Below, one piece after another: positions 1,965 to 33,829 of a stretch of 64,000 nt of DNA (within the stretch, counting starts at the first letter, position 1; every line of letters begins with the position of its first letter). The notes below the pieces were generated by a model. That model saw only the letters and a program-made list of their open reading frames with translations. It had not been told where the DNA came from and ran no database searches. Origin of the DNA: Lepidodermella squamata (taxonomy: Eukaryota > Animalia > Gastrotricha); NCBI GenBank assembly GCA_047495785.1, contig JBLDXI010000015.1, positions 3,968,001 to 4,032,000 of the forward strand. Direction: 5' to 3'. A program made the position numbers and the translations under genes.

Positions 1965-2880
1965 AGATTCGAGGCATATTGCAATAGCTTGATCTCCATG
2001 AAGACATGTTGCTGCCACGCCGCGATAAAAGTTAGAAGGGTTGCCAGCCTGAGCCAATCAATGCCAGTTGGTGAGCGAGGGTAACAGCCAGCCGAGCCCG
2101 GTCGCCCCGAAAGGGTGCCCAATCGCTGTAGCACCGCCATTCACATTAACACGGCTCTCCCAAGCAGGTATAGCAAGCTCTTTGATCACGACAAGGGTCG
2201 TGCAAGCAAAAGCTTCATTGATCTCCCAGGAAATCGATCGATTCGATCGGCCAGTCGGTTTTAGATAATGCAAGTCGGATCGCTGTAATAGGCTCAGTTC
2301 CCATCAAATTGCATTGCCCAGCTGATTGGCCCATCGTTCACCAAGAAATCAACCAGGGCCATATTCCCAAATTTAGCTATATGTCAGGTAGATTTGTCGA
2401 ACCTCCTTTTTGAGGAGTTCTCAGCCTTATAAGATGAGATGCCTTGGCAAATAAACGACAAATCATTCTTATTTTTTGTTGGCAAAATGTCAACCGACCT
2501 GGCTTACACTTTCCATGCCACCCGAAACAGTGACGACTGAATCTCCACAGCGAATACTTTGAGCAGAATTAACGATCGCCTTCATTTTCCAGACTCACAG
2601 ACCATGTTAACCGTATAGGCTGGTATACGACACGAAAGGCCAGCTAGCGAGCGCTATTCATTCCGCATCCTTCGAAAATTCGTGTTTTTCACTAATTTTT
2701 TACTAAAATTTCCATAAGACATGTACCTGCTGAAAGGACCTGTCCGAATGTTACTTCAGAAATATCACCGGGTGAGAAAAGTGGCTGCGCATCCTTAAGG
2801 ACAGCGATGAGACATACAGCGCCGAGTTGAGCCGCAGATAGATGCGAAAGCCCGCCGCAAAAATTGCCAACCGTCATTCA
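1965..2880 (-). pseudogene. Thiolase pseudogene, an inverted and internally deleted copy of 23670-25155
   Basis: Fragments VGNFCGGLSHLSAAQLGAVC and [21 protein letters not shown]...GHPFGATG are nearly identical to the intact gene. Frameshifts are present, much of exon 4 is deleted, and intron positions are retained. Confidence 0.9.
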
Positions 2881-3096
2881 TTTCAAATAATGATAATAGG
2901 TAATAATAATTTTAATTCTGAAATTGAATAAAAATGTTAATAAAAACAATGCCAGGAACAAGCATTGGGATAAAAAATAATAAAAAAGTTTCAACTTGTG
3001 ACCTTCTTTAATTAAAGAATACAAATTGTCACCTGAATTCCTCAGATTCTTGAAGTATACATGCCTCTGAAATTTTTTTTTTACAATGGTAATATA

Positions 3097-3269
3097 CAGT
3101 GGAACCCCGATTTCCCGTCTGACGGGAAATCGCGATATGTCAATATTTAGGACCGACTTGGACCCGCAGAGGGCATTTACACGCCAAACTGCCTGGATTT
3201 TCCGTCAATTTGAATTTCCCGTCGGGATTTTCGTGGAACCGCAAAAGACGAGAAATCGGGGTTTCACTG
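3097..3269. mobile_element. Tc1/mariner-pogo-type MITE (173 bp)
   Basis: 24-bp terminal inverted repeats CAGTGGAACCCCGATTTCCCGTCT / AGACGAGAAATCGGGGTTTCACTG (2 mismatches), flanked by TA on both sides. Confidence 0.85.
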
Positions 3270-3728
3270 TATAGACTTCGAATTATTCCTCCTGGGTTAA
3301 TGCCGTTTTATTCTCGCTGAGCTTCTCCTCATTTTTATGGGATTTCATCATCTATTGAGGTTCAAGAATGGCCGGGAAGAGTGGGCTAGAAACCACAAAA
3401 ATGTTGCCTTGACTGGTAGAACGAAAACCTACGCATCCTTTTAAATTATTAGCCTCCTATGAGTCAAACATGACCATACCATACAATACACGCGCAGCTA
3501 TTTGACACGCATGCTTTTTTACAACAGCGCACAGCGACATTTAGGGCGGAAAATAGGTAATAAGGGATCTAATGTGAACGTGCTTAGCATTTTTCATATG
3601 CCAGCAACTTGCCGAAAATCAGAAATAGTATAACGGATGAAATGACACCAACGTAATATCTACATGCTTTGAATTAAAAAATCGCATGATAATAGGCCGG
3701 CGCAACATGCCCGTGGGAGAGTATACCC

Positions 3729-3736
3729 TATAAATA
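3729..3736 (+). promoter_or_regulatory. TATA box upstream of the alpha/beta hydrolase
   Basis: TATAAATA about 55 nt upstream of ATG 3790. Confidence 0.5.
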
Positions 3737-3789
3737 GGGGCAACGGGTGAATTATCCTTTCATTTTTGTTTGTTTCAAGTTTTCATATA

Positions 3790-4737
3790 ATGGGCGACAA
3801 TGGCATTATAGTTAAGCGTAGCGAGCTGCATCTAGCCGATGGCGCCACGCTCGCCTACCAGTTGAGGAATCTCGCTACACCGGATCCTGCAAAACCGACG
3901 GAACGAATTATCTTAATTATCGGGGCACTGTCGTGTATGCGCCATTTCGAAGAACTATCCGCGGCGATCATCCAACATTTCCGCAACAGATTCAACGTTG
4001 AAGTTCTCATCTACGACCACCGCGGCATCGGCCATTCAAAACTTCCGAAGGGGCCGGTTAAAAAGCAGTCGACGGATCTGCTAGCTCGCGACGCTCTTGC
4101 TTTGGTTAACCACGCGTGGGGTTACAAAGCCAAAGTCCACGCGTTTGGCGGGAGTATGGGTGGAATGATTGCGCAAAAACTTGGCGTTTTTCTGGCAAAG
4201 GAAGACCGATTAGCCTCTCTGGCACTTGCCGTGTGCGCGAAGACGCATCCGGCTTACAAATTTAGAAATGCGCCATATTTTCTGGTTCAACGCGAAATCC
4301 ACAAGTACAACCGCAACTATGACCATGTGAAAATGCTTGAAAATATACTCATGCCTCTGTGCTTCAATCGAGAAGATTTCGCCGATATGGGCGATGAAGA
4401 ATTTAAGGAGCTTTACGACAAGTGGTACAAAACTTGGCTCAACGACTTCGATACGTGGTGGCACCGGGCGGATCCGGAAATTTGCGCGGCTCACATTTAC
4501 GCAATGATTTCACACAGATTCACGCAGAAAGAGGCTAATCACCTGCATGGACAGCGCGTCGCTGTATTCATATCACTTCGTGATCAGTCTTTTCCTGTTA
4601 CGGCAGAATACGATCTGGCTAAAATGGTCCGTGCCTCTGCCATCTTTACAGCGCCGCAAACACATGCTCCAATGAATGGCAGAGTGTTTAAGCAGATTTT
4701 GCAACATTATGACATGGTCTTCAAAAACGAACAATGA
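3790..4737 (+). CDS. Intronless alpha/beta-fold hydrolase (Abhydrolase_1/6-like)
   Basis: YDHRGIGHS motif, nucleophile elbow GGSMGG, candidate acid (RDQSF) and candidate His (THAP). Uninterrupted ORF. Confidence 0.88.
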   Translation: MGDNGIIVKRSELHLADGATLAYQLRNLATPDPAKPTERIILIIGALSCMRHFEELSAAIIQHFRNRFNVEVLIYDHRGIGHSKLPKGPVKKQSTDLLARDALALVNHAWGYKAKVHAFGGSMGGMIAQKLGVFLAKEDRLASLALAVCAKTHPAYKFRNAPYFLVQREIHKYNRNYDHVKMLENILMPLCFNREDFADMGDEEFKELYDKWYKTWLNDFDTWWHRADPEICAAHIYAMISHRFTQKEANHLHGQRVAVFISLRDQSFPVTAEYDLAKMVRASAIFTAPQTHAPMNGRVFKQILQHYDMVFKNEQ

Positions 4738-5708
4738 TAATATCGCGAAGCGAACAATGATTTACTGTAATATGAAACCTGAACGAAAGGCAGAACTTTT
4801 GCAGTAATTATCAAAATGTTACAAATTTTGCCTCTACCTTGCAATAAACAATAAACAAGTTTCGGTTATCTTTCGGTTGAATGCTCCTTATAAAGCATGC
4901 GAACACGATTGAAGATGGTTGATGATTTTCCGATCGGGTGATCAGAAATTTTTTTGAAAAATTGCGAATCGATGAGAATGAGGAGCGGAATGAGGTCGTT
5001 GGAAAAATGTTTAAAGTTTTTTCTGCTAAAGAAAAAATGCCTCAAATTCGATGAATTATCCATGAAATCATTGAAACAAAAATCTCTTCATTTAGCATTA
5101 CAATTAATTTTCAAATTATTTAATTTGTTATGTTATTTAATTTGAAATCTCTGGATTTCACTGATTTTATACTTTTCTCTGATTTTCCTGATTTTATGCT
5201 TTTTTACAAGCCAAGTACATTGTCGTTAAATGCACCAAATTTATTGCTTCTATTGGCCAAGTTGACCTCAAGTGGGCCGGAGTTTGCGAAGGATTTCCGT
5301 ATTGCTGAAGTGAATGTCCCTTCGAGGAGGCCGCGGCCACAGCCGGCGCACTCGGGATCAGCCTTAAAAATGTTTTTTTTCAAAAATTAAGCGCCCTTAC
5401 AGAGACTAGAAAAATTTGAACTGGCCTTGGAAATCATTTTGAGAAACTTTAAACTTTAAACATAAAGCCAATTGAGTGGCCACGCATGAGTGACCGTATA
5501 TGAATGCTCTAAAAAGGGCATTTTCAAGATGCATTCAGTAAAAACAGGACGAAAAACCAGACATAAAGTCATTAGATCGTTTATTTTTTAATGGACCGGG
5601 TGTCAAAAGTATTTATTAAATTATAAAGTTGTTCCGTCATACATGAGTGCACAATTTTGTAATCACATTTTATACACATTATCGGCAGCAAAAAAATATC
5701 AATTCGAT

Positions 5709-19020: not shown

Positions 19021-19923
19021 TTATTTTCCAAAATCGAAAAAATGACCAGAATTTTTAAGGTAGCAATCAATCATCTGCAACTTGTCGTCGTTATCACATA
19101 GCGATTCTACTTCATCCTCGAAATTCTCGCTAGAATTTTGCGACCTTATTTCGAAAGAAATCACCCGTCGAGGTTTCTTTCCAGCCGAGTGATCCACCGC
19201 CGGATTCAGCGAGCTGATCACAGATTGAAATACCTCTTCTTCCGCGACGCAGAATACATAGGGCAAAACGTCGGCTAGAGCCGATTTTCCAACATCCGAC
19301 CAGCTGATCTGCCTTAGAATTGAGCTAACAATTTCTGAGCTGTCCCTGACATCGGATTTAGCGATCCATTTGAAGACAAATCCAACCAGTTCTGTTTCGT
19401 TGAAATGTAGAGGTATGATTTCGCTCTTGAGAAGGCGAATTATGGCATCGTAGGAGATCTTCGATATCAACTCGCCTGAATCATCGTCCTTCAAAATAGG
19501 TATCCTCTTCTCCAGAAACGCGTCAAGTGAGTCGAGCAAGCTATTAATTTCGAAGGCAAGCGCTAGAGTTTCCAGTTCTTGAAAATTTTCGAAGTTGATG
19601 TTTGCACAGTCGAACAAATCTTTTTCCTCGCGCAGAATAGATAGAATATTCAATTCAGAGGCAGTTTCTAGGACAGACTGAAGCACGATTTCATCTTCAA
19701 TTTCAATTTTACCGCGGTACAGATAGTCGATGCATTTCGATAGGCCGATGGCTGAAAGGTCAGGCAGGCCGTAGAATTGCTCCATCATTTCGTCGCTACT
19801 GTTTTGCGAGAAAATTTCGCGGAAAAATGGCGATGCCGAGCTGAGAAGGCGGCGATGGACATGGTGAACTGTTCCATCGGCAGATATCAAGCAAGAGTCA
19901 GTAAAAGTCCTCGTTACACTCAT
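19021..19923 (-). CDS. BTB-BACK protein without Kelch repeats
   Basis: DSCLIS...HRRLLSSASPFF...IDYLYRG (BTB), then LLKSE...NETELVGFVFKWI (BACK). Confidence 0.85.
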   Translation of the reverse strand: MSVTRTFTDSCLISADGTVHHVHRRLLSSASPFFREIFSQNSSDEMMEQFYGLPDLSAIGLSKCIDYLYRGKIEIEDEIVLQSVLETASELNILSILREEKDLFDCANINFENFQELETLALAFEINSLLDSLDAFLEKRIPILKDDDSGELISKISYDAIIRLLKSEIIPLHFNETELVGFVFKWIAKSDVRDSSEIVSSILRQISWSDVGKSALADVLPYVFCVAEEEVFQSVISSLNPAVDHSAGKKPRRVISFEIRSQNSSENFEDEVESLCDNDDKLQMIDCYLKNSGHFFDFGK

Positions 19924-20298
19924 CGTAAAATTGATAGTAAGTTTTGGAGAGTGACTCAGAATCGTCTCATTTTCTGTTTCTCGGAGAGCAGTGTGCGGCG
20001 TGCGAGCACTACTTCGCACTCATCGCGCCGATTGACTACAATAAAGCTAATCTTATCGCGAAATTATGCTCGCTAATTGAGTGACATTGAAATTTTGATG
20101 AAATTGAAACGCGGTTTGAACAGACATGAAGTTTTTCCGAAACATCTTTGAGAATGTTAAAATCCGGTTGTTGAATGTTGAAAATTCTGATGAATCCTAT
20201 AGTATACAAATCCTATACTAATATCCAATATTTGAAGAGATTTCTTGCGAAAGCATATTCTGCAGCTGAGAAATTCGTCAAATGCTAGTGATTCGGTT

Positions 20299-21815
20299 TT
20301 ATTGAGCTACTGCCTTCGTGATAATTTCAATTATTCGCCGATGGTCATCTGAAATTATCTTGGTTGAATAAGGTTTGTTAGCCAAATCCGTTGCAGTTCG
20401 TCCCCTCTTGTTCTTCACCTTAGCATTGGCTTTGAATTTATTGACTAGAACATCAACAACAGCAAGTCGAGTCCAAAAGACAGCTTTCATCAGTGGCGTA
20501 TCGCCATCCTTATCTACCGCGTTAACCTTGGCTTCGAACCTGCCCACCAGCAGTTCCACGATCTCATCTCTGTCCCTCGTGGCGGCAATGTGCAGCGGCG
20601 TCGAGCCATACTTATTGGCCGCGTTGACGTCGGCTTTGAACTCGCCTGCCAGTAGTTCCACGACGTCGGCATAACCATTCGTTGCAGCCTCATGCAATGG
20701 AGTTTCCCCAACCTTATTCGCCACGTTCACATCGGCTTCGAACCTGCCCGCCAGCAGTTTCGCGACGTTAGCTTTGCCGTTACTAGCAGCATTATGCAAT
20801 GCCGTCGAGCCTTTCTTATCTCTAGCGTTAATATTGGCTTTGAACCTGCCCGCCAGTAGGTACACGACGCCAGCATGGCCATTCGTTGCGGCCTCGTGCA
20901 ATGGCGTGTCGCCATCCGCATCGGCCACGTTGACATCGGCTTTGAACTCGCCCGCCAGCAGGTACACAGCGTGAGCTCTGCCATGTTCGGCGGCCCAATG
21001 CAACGGCGTCGAGCCATATTTACATGGCGCGTTGACGTCAGCTTTGAACCTACCCGCCAGTAGTTCCACAACGTTGACTTTGCCATTGCTGGCGGCCCAA
21101 TGCAACGGCGTCGAGCCATACTTAGATGCTGCATTGACGTCGGCATTGAACTTGCCTACCAGCAGTTCCACGACGTTAGCATAGCCATGACGAGCAGCTT
21201 CGTGCAATGGCATCTCGCCATTCCTATCTACTGCGTTAACCTTGGCTTTGAACCTGCCCACCAGCAGTTCCGCAACCTCAGCAAAACCATTTGCGGCGGC
21301 GACGTGTAATGGCGTCGAACCGTATCCATTTGCCGCGTTGACGTTGGCTTTGAACTTGCCCGCCAGCAGTTCGATAACTTCAACGTGGCCTTTGAAGGCT
21401 GCATCATGAAGTGCAGTTCCGTCGTTGTTGTATCTGCCGTTAACATCCAGCCCCAATTTGTCCTTGCATAGCAGCAGTTGTGACATTCTCGCTACATCAT
21501 TTTCAAGTGTGCATCGCACGAATTCCTACTTCAATCATCAAATCGGAAAATATGATGGTTTCTTTAAAGAAAGCAACCTTGATAGCTTCCTGGGTGTTTT
21601 TCGGGAGTTCAACCGCCTAAATAATTCTAAATTATTTGAAACAGAATTCAACAGCCTTTGATAAACTTTACTGGGCTTGCAGAATTCTGCTCAACGGTCT
21701 CCTGCGACAATTGCCCTGTCCCTTCATTCGGCCTCACCGAATGAGGATTTTCTGGCTGTTCAAGACCACCACAGCCAAAAACCTTCCTTACTTGGAAGCG
21801 TACTGATTTGAACAT
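20299..21815 (-). CDS. Ankyrin-repeat protein (about 10 near-identical 34-aa repeats); main exon 20299 to about 21525, short 5' exons inferred
   Basis: Repeated GxTPLHxAAxxGxxxVVELLAGxFKADVNA. The upstream ATG at 21815 and its splice sites are tentative. Confidence 0.85.
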
Positions 21816-26003: not shown

Positions 26004-29000
26004 ATGACTAAACAATTACGCCCGAAAAATCTCGCAATGATGGCCACTGAGATGGCGAGTGCACGAATTCCTCCAAATCAAACAAAATCCGCCATAATTT
26101 TCTTGACAGGTAACAAAAATCCCTCATTTTCAGCTTTAATTCCTTTCGTTTCATATCAGCGAGAGGTAAGGAGGCTATAACGGATTATCGGGTGAACAGG
26201 CCTCCTGCTGTAGAAAAAGCAGATAATGAAAATGAAGACGACCTCAATCGTTGCGCATCGCCGTATGAAACGGAAAATCCACGCCGCCACATGTTAGCCG
26301 AATTTCGGCCTAATTACAAAAAATCCAAATTAGTGCTTAACGTCAAGTCAGTCTATCGCCGTGAGCCGTTAGACGTCGCTAAGATTTCTGCGCGGGCGAA
26401 CGCTGAGAAGCTGTCCCCCTCGACCACCATGAACGGGTGTTTGAAAAACCGCCGATCTTGGTCACCCAATTCAAGGTCATCGTTTGACACTTACCCGACT
26501 GAAGCGCCGCGGCCGATTGTTCACAAGCCTGATATTAAAATAGCTGGAGAAGCTGACTGGGGCAGAAATTTCGGCCAGATTTACGACTACGCTCCTCATG
26601 TTGAACCGGCTGAGGGCGAAAATGAGAAAATCATCGTTTTTCTCAGCTTCAACCTCGACTCCTTAATCGCTGGCGATGTTTTGAAGTACGCTGAAAATCT
26701 CCATAAATCAGACCTATATCGCGTATGGCTGCAGAAACCCAAGACGGGGAAACCTCATGACCAGGAGGAAAATTTATACTCAAGCATTGAGGTAAGATTT
26801 TAACACTAAAAACCTTGCCTAATTATTGCCTAATTTATAGGGTATTAAAGATTCTGATATCGTCGTAGTATTTCTCACCGATGACTACCTAAGCAGTCCA
26901 GCTATGAATGTCCAAGCTAGAGCAATTCGAAGGTATAAGAAGAAGAGAGTCGTTATAGATTTGATTGTATCAGCCCTACCGAATCCGTGGTTCGATGAAC
27001 TAATCTGCGAAGACTACGCCAGGGTCAAATTCGACCCGGGGGAGATTGAAACCGACTTTTGGGCGAAAATTGACTCCGAAATCGTATTGATGGCGAGGAG
27101 TAACCGACGTCCGAGGTTAGCGAAGCCATCCCGATGTGGGGTTCGAATGTTTGGCGTTGATACAAGTTACAATCAGCGTTACATAAATCGGCTGCAAGTT
27201 GAGGAAAATTTACGGCAAAGGGTTCGAGACGTAGTCACCCTACCTGGTACAGGTTAGTTAATTTCCCCGAATTTTACGAATCCTTATACCCTATTTCACA
27301 GCTATTTTAATGATCTATGGCGAGGATGGTATTGGCAAATCGTCCTTAGTAAACCATGCAATGGATGGCGAATTTTTGAACAGCGTCAAAATCGGAGCGA
27401 AAGCTTACCTTAACGTGAAGCATCTTTCAAGCGTTGAAGATTTCGAGAAGGCGGCCGATGAGCAATTTTTCTCTCTAATCGCTGAAGTCTTCGACGTGAA
27501 GTTGAATCAAGGGGAGAATGTAAAACGGGCCATTCAATCGCATCTGAGGACGAACATTCCAGGCAAGTCCCTGCTCATCCTCGACAGCGTTTATCACATT
27601 CGAATCATCGAATGCGTGAAATCACTCGGGCAAAGTTTGGTCACAATTTGCATTTCGACTCGTAATTTCCAAGCCGAGCTCAGTAGGTACAACTGGATGG
27701 TCGACCCGGCCTTTAGAATCGTTGACTTACCTATCGAAAACCAGCGAGAAATGTTCCGCCTTTGCGAGTCGAAGATTCAGTCTTCAACTTCAATCGCCTA
27801 CGACGCTCTTGATCGATTATCTGAGCTGAGCTTAGGTCTCCCCCTTTTGAGCCAGGTCATAAGTAGCAAAATTCTCATGACCCCGGAAGGCGATGAATTG
27901 AAAAATTACCTGAAAGACCTTGAGATGTTTTTCACGAAATTGAAAATCTCCCGCGAGATTGATAATGGCGAAAAGAGGCCGGAATCTGTTCGGAAGCTCT
28001 TACTGGTCGATTTCGATAAGGAAAACTACGAATTCAGACGGCGGCTGTATGTTTTCCTGTTGCTGAATGACGGCCAAAGTTCTGCCCTTGAAGATTTAGC
28101 AATTCTTTGGGGCTGTGAGGTCGACGAGGCGGAGGATTACGCTGATCAGTTGGTTGACCTTTGCCTAGTTCGAACTGACCATGACTTCAAAACCTTCAAC
28201 ATTCACTCGCAAATTTACGCGGCTTTGCTCGAGTTTATCGCCTCGAACTTCGACAATGACTACAAACATCTAGCCGATCTTGAAGCTATTCGTCGGGCGA
28301 TATTAGCCGAGTCTAAGAATGAGGCTACAAACGAGAATTTCCTGCATTTATCTGTTCAAAGGAACCGCCATAACCTAACGAAATCTCTGGCGTTTGCCTT
28401 AATTTCCGACTCAAGTGAAGACTTTATTTTCGAACAAATGTCCGAGCAGAACTCAAAGGGTGAAACGCCCCTCCATCTGTTGTTGAAGTCTGAATGGATT
28501 CAAAATGAGAACACCCCATGGGAGTCGAATCTTGGCCTCGAAATCGCTTGCCGGCTATCTGAACGAATGTTAGCCTTAGATCGTTATCGGACAGACGACT
28601 TATTCTCAAATGCGAAAAACCAGTTCGGCGAAACAATTCTCAAGTTACTTTCAAATGTGTTCGAATCCGGGAAGAAATGGCATCAAGTACCAATTTTCGC
28701 AGCTGTTAATTATGACTGCCTGGAACTTGTCGATTATTTGCTCGATAATGAAATTGACATCAACTCAACATCCGAGCTAGGGACATCGTTACTGTCCTTC
28801 GCCGCGAGTCGAGGCAAATCGCTGGCGATTCTTCGCCTGATTCAGCGGGATGTTGAGATGATCAACGTGAATTCGATTAACCAATCTGGCAAAAACGCGT
28901 TGATGATCGCGGCGGAGAACGGCGATCTTCAAGCTTGCACATGGCTAGTTGATGAAATGCAGAAGCTAAACATGACGCTTGAGATGGACGCGACTGATAA

Positions 29001-30969
29001 CGACAACGACACGGCGCTGATTTCAGCAGCTCGCCGGAAAAAGTTTGACGTAGTCGATTTCTTAGTGCAACAGGGCGCGAATGTTTTGATGCCGGGCAGA
29101 AATGGCGATTCAGCAATCTGGTTAGCTCTTACTGCTGGGAAGTTGAACTCGGCCCAGCTAATCTACGCAAAAGGAGGTCGGCTATCTGCTGATGAAAACG
29201 CTGTTCTCCAGCTAAGGGCTCAAATTACTGGCAATCGAGACATGGCCGATATTCTCAACAATTGGGAATTTGAGAATAAAATGCAGGAGATACCAACTGA
29301 TGACCAAAATTTCCCAGTCTTCCGCCGGGTTCAAACCGCTTTGTTCAGATATTTAAAAGTCAATCAACCCCCTAGCTCTTCGACTGAAGAGATCACGAAC
29401 ACCTATCTCCGCTACGCCTACGAAGGAAGTCATAAGCAATTGAAGACCTTGACCATTGGTAATAAGCCGTTTGATAAGGAGGTCAAAGAAACAGCCCTTT
29501 TTATTGCGTCGTATTTCGGTCATGACCTAGTTGTTAATTTCCTGTGCGAAGAAGAGCAAAATGCTGACCCGAATTTCTTTAATGGCGACCGCATCACTTC
29601 GCTAATTGCCGCATGCCTAAACCCTAAAAACTGCATAGGAATCGTGCGGAATCTTCTCGCGTGTAAGGCTGATGTGAACGCGGCTGATATCGAGGGACGG
29701 ACTGCCTTAATCGCGGCGTCATCTCGAGGCTACACCGAGATCGTTCAAGCTTTGCTGGAGGCTAATGCCGAGGTCGATTCGTTTGACGACGACGGCATGA
29801 CCGCTTTGATGCACGCTGCTTCGAAGGGCCATGAAGCAATCGTGAAAGCCTTGTTAGATCACCGGGCTAATGTCGAGGCTAGGACTAATCGTGATGGAAG
29901 AACTGCTTTGATGTTATCGGCTCAAAATGGCCATGAAGAGGTGACGAAAATGTTAATCCAGGTTGGGAAGGCCGTGTTCAATAATTACGACGAATCAGGC
30001 GCGACGGCTCTAATGTTAGCCGCCGAGAGCTGTCATCTAGACACAGTTCGAGTTCTGCTAGCCAATAAGGCCGACGTCAATACCGTCGACCATTTACAGG
30101 GCAGAAATGCGTTGATGTATGCGGCGAAGAACGATTTAGATGGCAAAACTGTTGGGCTGATTATTCCTTTCCGGGCTGATATCAACGCTCGGGATAAAAC
30201 TGGCCGAACTGCCCTGGCTATTGCTGCTGAGAACGGCCGGGATAACGCTGTTCGAGTTCTGTTGGACAACGAATCGATTGATATCAACATCCGAACCTTA
30301 GAAGACGGCATGACTGCGATAATGCTGGCGGCTCATTGCGGTCATGATTCAATCGTAAGGAAATTACTGGCTCGAAAGATTGATATTAATGGTGTTAATT
30401 ACTCCGGCTTGACACCACTCATGCTTGCGGTTGAGAATAACCACGAAACCGTTGTAGCCACCCTAGTTCGAAAGGGCGCGGATGTTAACGTGGCTAGATC
30501 GGCAACTGGCGCTACTGCTCTAATAATGGCGGCTGAGAAGGGTTTCGATTCAATTGTTCGGCTTCTCGCGAATAACAAGGCCTGCAACGTCAATGCCGCG
30601 ACGAAGGAGGGCATAACAGCCCTGATGACAGCTGCGATAAAAGGCTACGATGGCATGGTTGAGAGTTTGGTCAAGTCGGAGAATAAAGTCGATATCGATG
30701 CCCAGCAAAGCGAGGGCTATACAGCGCTGATGTTTGCGGCGATTTTCGGTCAAGAGGGCGTTGTTGAGGTCTTGTTCGCTGCTGGTTCTGACGTGAATTT
30801 AACCGATAAATCTGGTAATACAGCGGAGATGTTGGCTGAGGAAAACGGGCATCGCGAGGTAGCTAGATTGTTACATCAACGACCTGTGACTGTCACGTTC
30901 GCTTCAGAACCGGAAATAGCGTCTGCCGGCGATAGGGAAGAATCTTTCTGGGAAGTTACCGATTTGTGA
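26004..30969 (+). CDS. TIR - NB-ARC (STAND NTPase) - ankyrin-repeat NLR-like protein; exons 26004-26109, 26160-26791, 26841-27252, 27302-30969
   Basis: TIR-like IIVFLSF...RVWL...IKDSDIVVVFLTDDYLSS. Walker A GEDGIGKS, Walker B SLLILDSV, GLPL motif, LAILWG winged helix and MHD-position IHS. Roughly 20 ankyrin repeats follow. Three short GT-AG introns join the ORFs in frame. Confidence 0.88.
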
Positions 30970-32084
30970 ATACTTATTTATTGATATATTCAGTCTTCCA
31001 CTTAACTCTATTTTCCAATGTTGCATGGCGGTTTTTTGGTACAAATAAATTACAGAGCTATAGGAGTGTTGTGTTTTTTTTATCAGGTGTGTTGTATATC
31101 ATGCACATTGCTACGCAAATCTGGAACGCCGTGATGTTACACGCTGATTGCTTCATTATTTGTATGAAGACATCGTTGTTGTATCGGAGTTTCGCTAAAT
31201 GGTAGGGAGGTAGCGAAACATGATATAGCATCTCAGCGCTCATCCCAAGGTCGGAAAATCAAGCACGTGCATTACCTAAATACTACGCTGAATTCGATTG
31301 ATGCCTTGCAATCTCCGGAATAAAAAATTAAGGTGGAATTTCCCTTACAGTAATTTTTTTCATTATTTATTCGTTAACTGCCTGCGATCGTACATCTCAA
31401 CTTCCTCTCTCAAATTTTCGGTCGATGGGCTGTGTGGTATATGCTTGAAAAAGAGCGTTAAAATTTGATATAGATTTTACAGCGTGCCCCATAAGTTGTG
31501 CTGATTTTTTTAATATTGGAATTTTTTAGGAATTTAACCACTAATTTTCAGAAATTAAGCCGACTGTATGGAATCTTCCACCCTTTATCCACGATTTTAC
31601 CGAAAAAATTTATTTTACCGAAGAAGCCCATGAAAAACCCGTCGGTAACTATGGTTCGGTAATTTTCGGTTTTTACCTGGTTGGATCAGTTTCCTTCGGA
31701 TTTTTTTAATCTCATTTAACAAGAGACATACTTGATCACTATTCCCATGGCATTTTGGGACTCATTTTAGAGTTCTAGAACGCGACGCAATCATGATCTA
31801 AAAATATTATTTGAAAATTGTGCCTTTTATAGGTTTGCATTTGGGTTCCCTACAGTCAATTTTGGTTCCGCTGAAAGATATTCTGATTGATTTTCCCAAA
31901 ATATGGTATGTATCCAACATTGAAAATGCGCCTTGTTGAAATATATAAATCGGTGTAAAAATCCGAATTTCGATTTTTTAATGACATTTTTTTATTAATT
32001 TTTCTCGGAATTTTCACAAATTAAATTTTGACCTATTTCTTGGCGTTTGAGACAAATATTTTGTCTTTCCATTTAGGAATAAAA

Positions 32085-32560: not shown

Positions 32561-33829
32561 TTATTCAACGTTGAGTGGGCAAAAATCTCTGTCAATAATT
32601 GTGGCAATGTCGTCGAAATCTAGATATTTCTGGATTAGAATCGGCAAATTCAGGCTTTTTATTGCCGCTCGACGGTCATTGAGACCGAGCGGCAATTTAG
32701 CGAGAACAGCCCTTCGAGCGAAAGACGCGAGATTTAGCGGTAATAACCGACCGATTTCGTCGTTATCACGACGCTGAAAAACTTGGAAATCGCAGTGGAG
32801 TTCGATAAAAAATACGAGCATCGGATGGCTCTTGAGCGGAAGGCAGGTACAAAAAGCGGCCTGAGAACAGGGCAGTCGAAAGCCGCATCGCAACAATAAT
32901 AGAATGCTGTTATAAATTTCAACAAAATGTTTCTGGCTCAACATAGAATCAGGGTCAAAAACGGCCCACGAGCAGGTGAGTAAATGCCCAGCGCTGCTGT
33001 TCGCTGATCGCATCAAGTGTTCGAAAGCTGCGTTAACAAAAGCGTAAGTCGCCACAAATCGCCCGATTGCGAAAAAATTGAAGACATCCCAGGGCGATCG
33101 AACGATTTCAGCATGTAAATTATTCGTAAAAATCGAAGAAGAATTTCTGCTCTCACAGCATCGGCATGAAATTGCAGTTTGATTCAGGTCGTCAAAATTA
33201 GCCGAGCAATCAATGTCGTGGAAGCAATTATCCACAATAAAACCGACAATAGCCTCGACAAAACATCGCGGCAAAATATCGGCACTTATTGATACATTCG
33301 TGAGACATTTCTCGAAAATTGACTCGTAATTCTGACTCGCTGCCAACATACAGGTTAGGTAGAAACCAGGCTCCAACCGATCGATTTGCAGTGTTAAATG
33401 CCTATTCGTGAAAGCTGCTACAAAGTCGTACATGAACATTTCAAACTGTTCGGCTGTCCAATGCGGCAGGCCGAAAATTCGAACTCGAGGGCAGTTTGGC
33501 AATAATTTCGCGAAAATCGGCGACGTAAATAAGCCGCGATTCGGCCCGTCTTCAACATCCTTCTGCTCGCTGTAGGCGACGAGTTTGAAGTGATATTCAG
33601 GCTTCTTTTTGAAGACTTCGATTGAGCAAGTGTGGTCCATGCGGCGGACCATTAGCAGATTTCTTATGATTTTTCTAATTTCAATTTTGATGGCCTTTTT
33701 ACACCTCACGAGGAACTCGGGCTGATTAAATTGGCAATGGTCGCCGCATTTGCTGTGGATGTCAATCGGTTCTGGTTGCTGCTGTTTCGGCGAAAAATGA
33801 CGCTTCCAAAATTTTATTAACGCAGCCAT
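32561..33829 (-). CDS. SOCS-box protein with an unrecognised N-terminal region (422 aa)
   Basis: C-terminal PLNLASFARRAVLAKL...IKSLNLPILIQKYL (BC box plus cullin box). Confidence 0.8.
   Translation of the reverse strand: MAALIKFWKRHFSPKQQQPEPIDIHSKCGDHCQFNQPEFLVRCKKAIKIEIRKIIRNLLMVRRMDHTCSIEVFKKKPEYHFKLVAYSEQKDVEDGPNRGLFTSPIFAKLLPNCPRVRIFGLPHWTAEQFEMFMYDFVAAFTNRHLTLQIDRLEPGFYLTCMLAASQNYESIFEKCLTNVSISADILPRCFVEAIVGFIVDNCFHDIDCSANFDDLNQTAISCRCCESRNSSSIFTNNLHAEIVRSPWDVFNFFAIGRFVATYAFVNAAFEHLMRSANSSAGHLLTCSWAVFDPDSMLSQKHFVEIYNSILLLLRCGFRLPCSQAAFCTCLPLKSHPMLVFFIELHCDFQVFQRRDNDEIGRLLPLNLASFARRAVLAKLPLGLNDRRAAIKSLNLPILIQKYLDFDDIATIIDRDFCPLNVE

Follow-up and report, generated by a model that had tools for sequence, protein, structure and literature searches.

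Does a single animal gene join a TIR-like domain, an NB-ARC switch and an array of ankyrin repeats, and could such a TIR-like head still work as an enzyme? These questions are raised by a stretch of 64,000 nucleotides from the gastrotrich Lepidodermella squamata (assembly GCA_047495785.1, contig JBLDXI010000015.1, positions 3,968,001 to 4,032,000 of the forward strand), which is called the window in the following and from whose first letter all coordinates are counted. A first-pass annotation, made from the letters alone, had proposed one spliced animal gene at 26004-30969 with a TIR-like domain, an NB-ARC-type NTPase and about 20 ankyrin repeats, and this layout is borne out by an in-frame coding sequence and by splice junctions in sequencing contigs. 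We consider it fairly probable that the gene is a transcribed, small-intron invertebrate NLR-type STAND switch whose TIR head, with glutamine at position 271, would act as a non-enzymatic partner or scaffold, and we place the protein in a lineage-specific variant of the NLR-type receptors, as a member without the glutamate. What is new here is the proof of splicing at the level of single junctions for this gene, together with a confident model of its NB-ARC domain and the point that this copy is without the Glu.

The gene has four exons on the plus strand, separated by three GT-AG introns of 50, 49 and 49 nt. Joining them (26004-26109, 26160-26791, 26841-27252 and 27302-30969) gives a coding sequence of 4,818 nt, i.e. 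1,605 amino acids and a stop codon, without any internal stop. The largest open reading frame (ORF), 27310-30969, comprises 1,219 amino acids and is preceded by two ORFs that can be joined in frame and by a short first ORF; at a GC content of 42-47%, an ORF of 1,219 codons far exceeds what chance would produce. The earlier reading of three separate ORFs spliced into one gene is thus right as to the joining and incomplete as to the count, since there are four exons in all, with the three large ORFs being exons 2 to 4. Exon 2 (26160-26791) encodes a polar N-terminal region and the first half of the TIR-like domain, exon 3 (26841-27252) the second half and a linker, and exon 4 (27302-30969) the NB-ARC domain, the ankyrin arrays, the tail and the stop codon.

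Two public sequencing runs, X1 and X2, contain the stretch; X2, which is guessed to be RNA, has contigs in 30 of its 30 bins. Intron 2 (26792-26840, 49 nt), which interrupts the TIR-like domain, is removed in an X2 contig that jumps from 26791/2 to GTATTAAAGA, corresponding to 26842-26851. Intron 3 (27253-27301, 49 nt), which separates the TIR/linker exon from the NB-ARC exon, is removed in two X2 contigs in which CCTACCTGGT (27239-27248) stands immediately before 27298, with the cut position being ambiguous by 4 nt owing to a shared ACAG. Both GTATTAAAGA and CCTACCTGGT are single-copy in the window and both differ from the genomic continuation. The junction contigs therefore show the splicing of one TIR exon to the other and of the TIR/linker exon to that of the NB-ARC domain, and the possibility raised with the original proposal, namely that TIR and NB-ARC exons belong to separate genes, falls away. 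Among the best-supported variants listed, 19 codons are changed synonymously and 10 non-synonymously in X1, and 16 and four, respectively, in X2. This synonymous excess gives a rough indication of purifying selection, read from counts of codons and not from a dN/dS estimate. We conclude that this is a real gene, which is intact and expressed.

Exon 4 opens with an NB-ARC NTPase of the NBD-HD1-WHD type (27304-28251, plus strand), recognised by its relatives, a family profile and its predicted fold. Measured against the usual NB-ARC motifs (GxxxxGK[ST], Walker B hhhhDD, sensor TT/SR, GLPL and MHD), it carries the P-loop GEDGIGKS (27319-27342), the Walker B LLILDSV (27571-27591), ISTRN (27652-27666), GLPL (27835-27846) and NIHS (28198-28209), the last holding an MHD-like IHS in which the histidine is retained. 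The piece 27304-28599 alone gave only modest Pfam values, with APAF-1-like WHD at E 0.0047, NB-ARC (PF00931) at 0.0087, which is below the cut-off, and NACHT at 0.012, and a PDB sequence search with the same piece gave no match. When 1.84 billion cluster representatives were searched exhaustively, nine relatives with E no higher than 0.001 were returned, linked to the window protein at E 1e-24 to 1e-4 (best 1.2e-24, 26% identity), and because they are just nine the lineage is essentially unannotated. Eight of the nine were scanned with Pfam: ankyrin repeats were present in all eight and NB-ARC was matched in seven (the exception being P0003), in five of them above the Pfam cut-off and with values down to 3.6e-16.

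A family alignment of nine rows that includes the window protein (A3) was used both as a profile against PDB and as input to AlphaFold. The profile matched NRC1 (2.9e-15), Apaf-1 (2.2e-14), NRC2 (2.6e-12), Sr35 (6.1e-9), ZAR1 (RPP13-like protein 4; 2.6e-6) and CED-4 (3.3e-6), with alignments extending to the MHD position, while the best NACHT chain, an NLRP, reached only 0.008. The AlphaFold (AF2) model of the NB-ARC domain has a pLDDT of 80.3 and a pTM of 0.72. In Foldseek its top matches were NRC2, Apaf-1 and the NB-ARC of NRC1 at 1e-10 to 1e-12, among them resting NRC2 (8xuo, 6.1e-12, TMq 0.56) and ADP-bound Apaf-1 (1z6t, 6.7e-12, TMq 0.59); WRR4A, Roq1 and RPP1 were listed as well, and no NACHT protein appeared among the best 50. 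Structure neighbours in the ESM Atlas were NB-ARC-TPR proteins of the AfsR type from actinobacteria (TM 0.64-0.69), and also NB-ARCs of plants. Pfam scores for NACHT ranged from E 0.012 to 0.084 and were in no case better than those for NB-ARC. By profile and predicted fold, the NTPase is an NB-ARC and not a NACHT domain. The second acidic residue of its Walker B motif is absent (LLILDS), where most relatives have DD, and this D-S for D-D exchange suggests a slow turnover of ATP.

Pfam searches with the C-terminal 880 residues gave Ank_2 at E 8.7e-112 and Ank at E 3.9e-91 with 14 matched stretches; no family other than ankyrin was found in these residues, so there is no LRR. By pattern and by eye we count about 19-23 repeats, mostly of the G-x-T-A-L-M-x-A-A type, in two blocks. 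Block 1 (28333-29271, residues 728-1040) comprises about five to nine repeats of which the first ones are degenerate, and some 70 residues that are not repeats and have no family match (29272-29484) separate it from block 2 (29485-30921, residues 1112-1590), which has about 14 regular repeats. As the repeats start about 45 residues past the IHS, there is no HD2 of the Apaf-1 type. The protein ends in E-V-T-D-L (30952-30966), which agrees, as a pattern only, with the class I PDZ-ligand motif [ST]-x-hydrophobic.

The closest of the relatives shows the same three parts in a single piece. P0001, encoded on a metagenomic contig (locus L001) together with kinesin and C2H2 zinc-finger genes, carries a TIR-like domain, NB-ARC and ankyrin repeats in one uninterrupted ORF of 1,456 codons, and it is independent support for the architecture of the window gene. 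Its Walker B reads VLVLQG, without both acidic residues, and its TIR glutamate is kept, so that P0001 and the window protein show complementary 'defects'. Other relatives differ in front of the switch. ORFs of about 130-150 residues precede P0006, P0008 and P0009 (L007:223-609, L008:417-863 and L009:1869-2267) and match no Pfam family. We considered them as TIR domains and rejected this, as they are helical and not TIR-like. Between the helical ORFs of L008 and L009 the kinship is clear (E about 2e-11), whereas that of L007, before P0006, is related only marginally (E about 0.05), and they are probably an alternative, undescribed N-terminal head on the same NB-ARC-ankyrin switch. P0002 has neither an N-terminal domain nor room for one. 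An exchange of heads in front of a switch that is itself conserved is a typical trait of NLR families. On L009 a gene with an ankyrin-repeat end (3-1757) lies directly upstream of the NB-ARC-ankyrin gene (2484-5033) on the same strand, and this pair suggests that a related metagenomic animal has members of the family in tandem arrays.

By analogy, the receptor may have a role in immunity or cell death. A STAND scaffold with a non-immune job, either in trafficking or cytoskeletal signalling as in ANKRD50/TANC or in developmental cell death as in Apaf-1, seems rather unlikely to us. The feature-space neighbours of the NTPase are indeed ANKRD50/TANC-like clusters, TALMxAA-type ankyrin repeats also occur in ANKRD50/TANC-like proteins, and the -TDL tail is PDZ-ligand-like. 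However, these neighbours reach only 0.85-0.87, under the lead threshold of 0.9, Pfam gives NB-ARC and an APAF-1-type WHD rather than NPHP3_N or WHD_TANC1, with no PF24883 or PF25521 at E up to 10, and both profile and fold searches rank NB-ARC immune and apoptotic switches first; an ANKRD50/TANC identity was rejected on these grounds. The exchange of N-terminal domains among the relatives is likewise what would be expected of immune receptors.

The NB-ARC-ankyrin receptor appears to carry a TIR-like head at residues 192-335 (26627-27107, plus strand, split by intron 2), beginning with the putative strand βA KIIVFLSF (26627-26650). This domain is probably a divergent TIR of the TIR_2 type. For the exon-3 half, TIR_2 (PF13676) was the sole Pfam family (E 8.7e-4; positions 47-101 of a profile of 122). 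In P0001 the N-terminal domain, which is 27% identical over about 145 residues (window residues 194-337), has TIR_2 as its best Pfam match too (E 2.6e-3, 18.7 bits, positions 1-92), and the profile registers of both agree. All ESM Atlas feature neighbours of the exon-3 piece were TIR_2 clusters (best 0.93, 14 at 0.9 or above), and those of P0001 were all TIR clusters (best 0.89). TIR-type patterns are visible by eye in βA (IIVFLSF) and in αB-βC-αC (IEGIKDSDIVVVFLTDDYLSS). The first-pass annotation had made its proposal depend on a TIR profile match for this region; such a match exists, although below the Pfam cut-off and for the exon-3 half only.

The position of the catalytic glutamate of TIR enzymes is taken by glutamine. 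The predicted helix αC, SPAMNVQARAIRRYKKK, starts at 26895, and its stretch SPAMNVQA (26895-26918), which the first-pass annotation had singled out, indeed holds Gln271, encoded by CAA at 26913-26915, where the glutamate would be expected. This assignment aligns Tyr262 with the conserved tyrosine of the plant motif Y-A-x-S-x-W-C-L-x-E-L, and thereby puts the Glu position at Gln271. In a pairwise alignment P0001 (SIETETEA) has Glu where the window protein has Gln271. The helix αC contains no Asp or Glu at all, and a small error of register therefore supplies no acidic residue. The residues after βB (WLQKPK) also lack the BB-loop Asp, with the alignment being less certain at this point. NADase activity of TIR domains has been described as depending crucially, and in every case, on the catalytic Glu together with Asp and Gly of the BB loop; in pairs of plant TIR-NLRs these residues are missing from the sensor members and retained by the executors (PMC13732033). 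If the domain has the TIR fold, the head is most likely unable to hydrolyse NAD+, because Gln271 occupies the catalytic position and the αC helix is without an acidic residue.

Several results weigh against a Gln-271 TIR head that serves a partner in an expressed receptor. The exon-3 half scores 20.2 bits against a TIR_2 gathering cut-off of 28 bits, and the first TIR half alone has no Pfam match. PDB sequence searches with the exon-3 half, with the TIR of P0001 and with a two-row TIR profile gave no TIR match, and PADLOC and NCBIfam gave no TIR or STAND match. The single-sequence AlphaFold model of the P0001 TIR is poor (pLDDT 47.5), and Foldseek with it was not significant, returning a mixture of TIR, DNPH1, MID and flavodoxin folds. 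The equivalence of Gln271 with the catalytic Glu rests on motif spacing and on a pairwise alignment at 27% identity. There is no adjoining or head-to-head partner gene in the window. Finally, the organism code of X2 differs from that of the best DNA holder, yet most X2 contigs are at least 99% alike.

An alternative that draws on these points is that the N-terminal domain is some other small α/β domain, for instance a flavodoxin-like one, that merely resembles the TIR_2 profile. We regard this as quite unlikely. Scores of only 18-20 bits, which are below the cut-off, the want of a TIR match in PDB, PADLOC and NCBIfam and the mixed folds would fit it, but two domains of only 27% mutual identity have TIR_2 as sole (window piece) or best (P0001) match in agreeing registers, all feature-space neighbours are TIR clusters, and the combination of a βA of the form hhhLSF with xVVVFxxxxYxxS is typical of TIR. 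The search for further TIR-bearing relatives found none in genome contigs or, with the TIR alignment, in metagenome contigs, and word-index searches with the NTPase part, with TIR plus NTPase of P0001 and with the TIR alignment (A2) returned only P0001 itself; tblastn of the P0001 TIR against plasmids gave no match, and a scan of metagenome contigs with the NTPase alignment yielded one short NB-ARC fragment (L005). A MAFFT alignment (A1) was discarded, as it misplaced the first TIR half onto βC.

Improbable to a somewhat greater degree is that the domain is a TIR which is still an enzyme, cleaving NAD+ or nucleic acid, either because the alignment is off and the true catalytic residue lies elsewhere or because a second haplotype carries Glu. 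The TIR alignment is weak, a divergent form in X1 spans codon 271 (record 1, with 17 differences over 26716-27008), and a single C-to-G change in CAA would make Glu. Against this, shifting the register by a few residues would not help, as the whole αC helix is without Asp or Glu; βC, the conserved Tyr and position 271 are spaced exactly as in the plant TIR motif, and CAA is found both in the assembly and in the identical X1 contig.

How might a receptor with a Glu-less head work? In the mechanism that we propose, the ankyrin array would keep the NB-ARC domain closed and ADP-bound, and a ligand on the repeats would lead to nucleotide exchange and oligomerisation, by which the TIR heads would be gathered. 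The Glu-less head could then offer a surface for assembly or regulation, e.g. by pairing with Glu-bearing TIR heads or with other TIR adaptors, and would thus be comparable to the sensor TIR of the plant pair RRS1/RPS4. A more specific version, which we hold to be possible but unlikely, is a division of labour in which Glu-less members such as the window protein, with its Gln271 and its Walker B D-S, are sensors or brakes that hetero-oligomerise with Glu-bearing 'executor' paralogues, and in which the logic of sensor and executor would have arisen independently in animals. That the gene is instead a decaying member on its way to a pseudogene is very improbable, for the Gln at the catalytic position and the D-S in Walker B are set against a 4.8-kb coding sequence without stop that is transcribed, correctly spliced and has synonymous changes in excess.

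The combination of parts can be compared with several known systems. As in plant TNLs, a TIR-like head precedes an NB-ARC switch, with a sensor made of repeats at the C-terminus, and the predicted NB-ARC fold matches that of plant NLRs. In plant TNLs, however, the C-terminus consists of LRR and C-JID in place of ankyrin repeats, and for the present gene, which is from an animal, an EDS1-type pathway is not known. The likeness extends to RRS1-type sensor TIRs of the RRS1/RPS4 pair, in which the catalytic Glu is also missing (PMC13732033). It differs from paired plant TNLs in that a head-to-head partner is absent from the window and the TIR is of TIR_2 type and very divergent.

An animal TIR-NB-ARC protein is not without precedent, and the novelty implied by the first-pass annotation was overstated: such a protein was described in 2007 from amphioxus, among expanded CED-4/Apaf-1 homologues, and was likened to plant R genes (Zmasek et al. 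2007, PMC2246300). The amphioxus protein likewise has a TIR in front of NB-ARC in an animal; by description, the amphioxus proteins have WD40, TPR or no C-terminal repeats, and no ankyrin array was reported (PMC2246300). Apaf-1 and CED-4 share NBD-HD1-WHD with the window protein, Apaf-1 having the profile and Foldseek values given above, but the receptor is without CARD, HD2 and WD40, with no Pfam match to CARD or WD40. In fungal NLRs, ankyrin repeats are found preferentially after NACHT, and only a small fraction of NB-ARC domains carry them (Dyrka et al. 2014, PMC4986451). Fungal ankyrin NLRs resemble the window protein in their tripartite layout of effector, NOD and ankyrin repeats and in the swapping of N-terminal domains among relatives (PMC4986451); they differ in their heads, which are HET, HeLo, PNP_UDP and similar domains, and belong to a different kingdom.

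Among bacterial proteins, AfsR/SARP-type NB-ARC-TPR STANDs come closest to the NB-ARC domain in the predicted structures of the ESM Atlas, and TIR_2 proteins form the feature-space clusters nearest to the TIR piece. The bacterial STANDs have TPR where ankyrin repeats are found here, and the window gene has spliceosomal introns and animal neighbours; no significant sequence match to any bacterial protein was found in cluster, PADLOC/NCBIfam and genome-contig searches. The metazoan NACHT-LRR NLRs differ in their NTPase, which is NB-ARC here and not of NACHT type. The TIR of SARM1 has a catalytic helix of the W-x-x-x-E type. SARM1 likewise has an animal TIR, of the enzymatic lineage, but it has kept the Glu and combines its TIR with ARM-SAM domains rather than a STAND switch. 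A literature search that reached few subscription journals found no papers on animal TIR-NB-ARC-ankyrin proteins. If the TIR head is real, receptors of the TIR-NB-ARC kind have been built by animals too, in this case with ankyrin repeats as the sensor, and the pairing of NB-ARC with ankyrin repeats is a minority even among fungi. A Glu-less copy that is nevertheless selected and expressed would, on the same condition, be a natural experiment on a non-enzymatic TIR in a STAND receptor, and it makes an independent animal origin of the sensor/executor pairing known from plants testable.

The window is of animal origin, because it encodes the ligand-binding domain of a Cys-loop channel and a secretin-family 7TM receptor; it also encodes a BTB protein. 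A multi-exon thiolase lies just upstream of the receptor gene, and a 422-codon ORF (32561-33829, minus strand) without Pfam match at E up to 0.001 follows immediately downstream in the opposite orientation. Within the window, the first 820 residues of the receptor have no paralogue, and neither Rfam families nor DNA tandem repeats were found in 24-33 kb. A 406-codon ORF at 20299-21519 (minus strand), beside a BTB-domain ORF at 19021-20019 (minus strand), consists of very regular 34-residue ankyrin repeats of TPLH type (GRFKADVNA...GSTPLH). It was considered as a paralogue of the receptor and rejected, as its TPLH-type repeats are unrelated to the TALM-type repeats of the receptor.

At the 5′ end of the gene, exon 1 (26004-26109), with the start codon, residues 1-35 and one further base, and intron 1 (26110-26159, 50 nt, GT-AG) are predictions from the DNA and from the in-frame join to exon 2; X2 depth is low there and no RNA junction covers them. 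An alternative start would be M80 at 26291. Residues 1 to about 190 (26004-26626) are polar and rich in Ala, Arg, Pro, Glu and Asn, without similarity to the N-terminus of P0001, and the exon 2 piece, which includes this polar region of about 190 residues, has no family match in Pfam. A candidate polyadenylation signal, AATAAA, follows about 75 nt past the stop codon (31044-31049, plus strand). Also in X2, joints between 'opposite strands' recur by the dozen, at spacings of about 90-150 nt, between 27217 and 30892; they are probably fold-back artefacts of the library or the assembly. In X1 two contig forms were seen at 26716-27008 and at 27858-28113, one identical to the assembly and one 6-7% different; the divergent form has 8 extra letters within intron 2 and might stem from very strong heterozygosity or from the collapse of a close paralogue.

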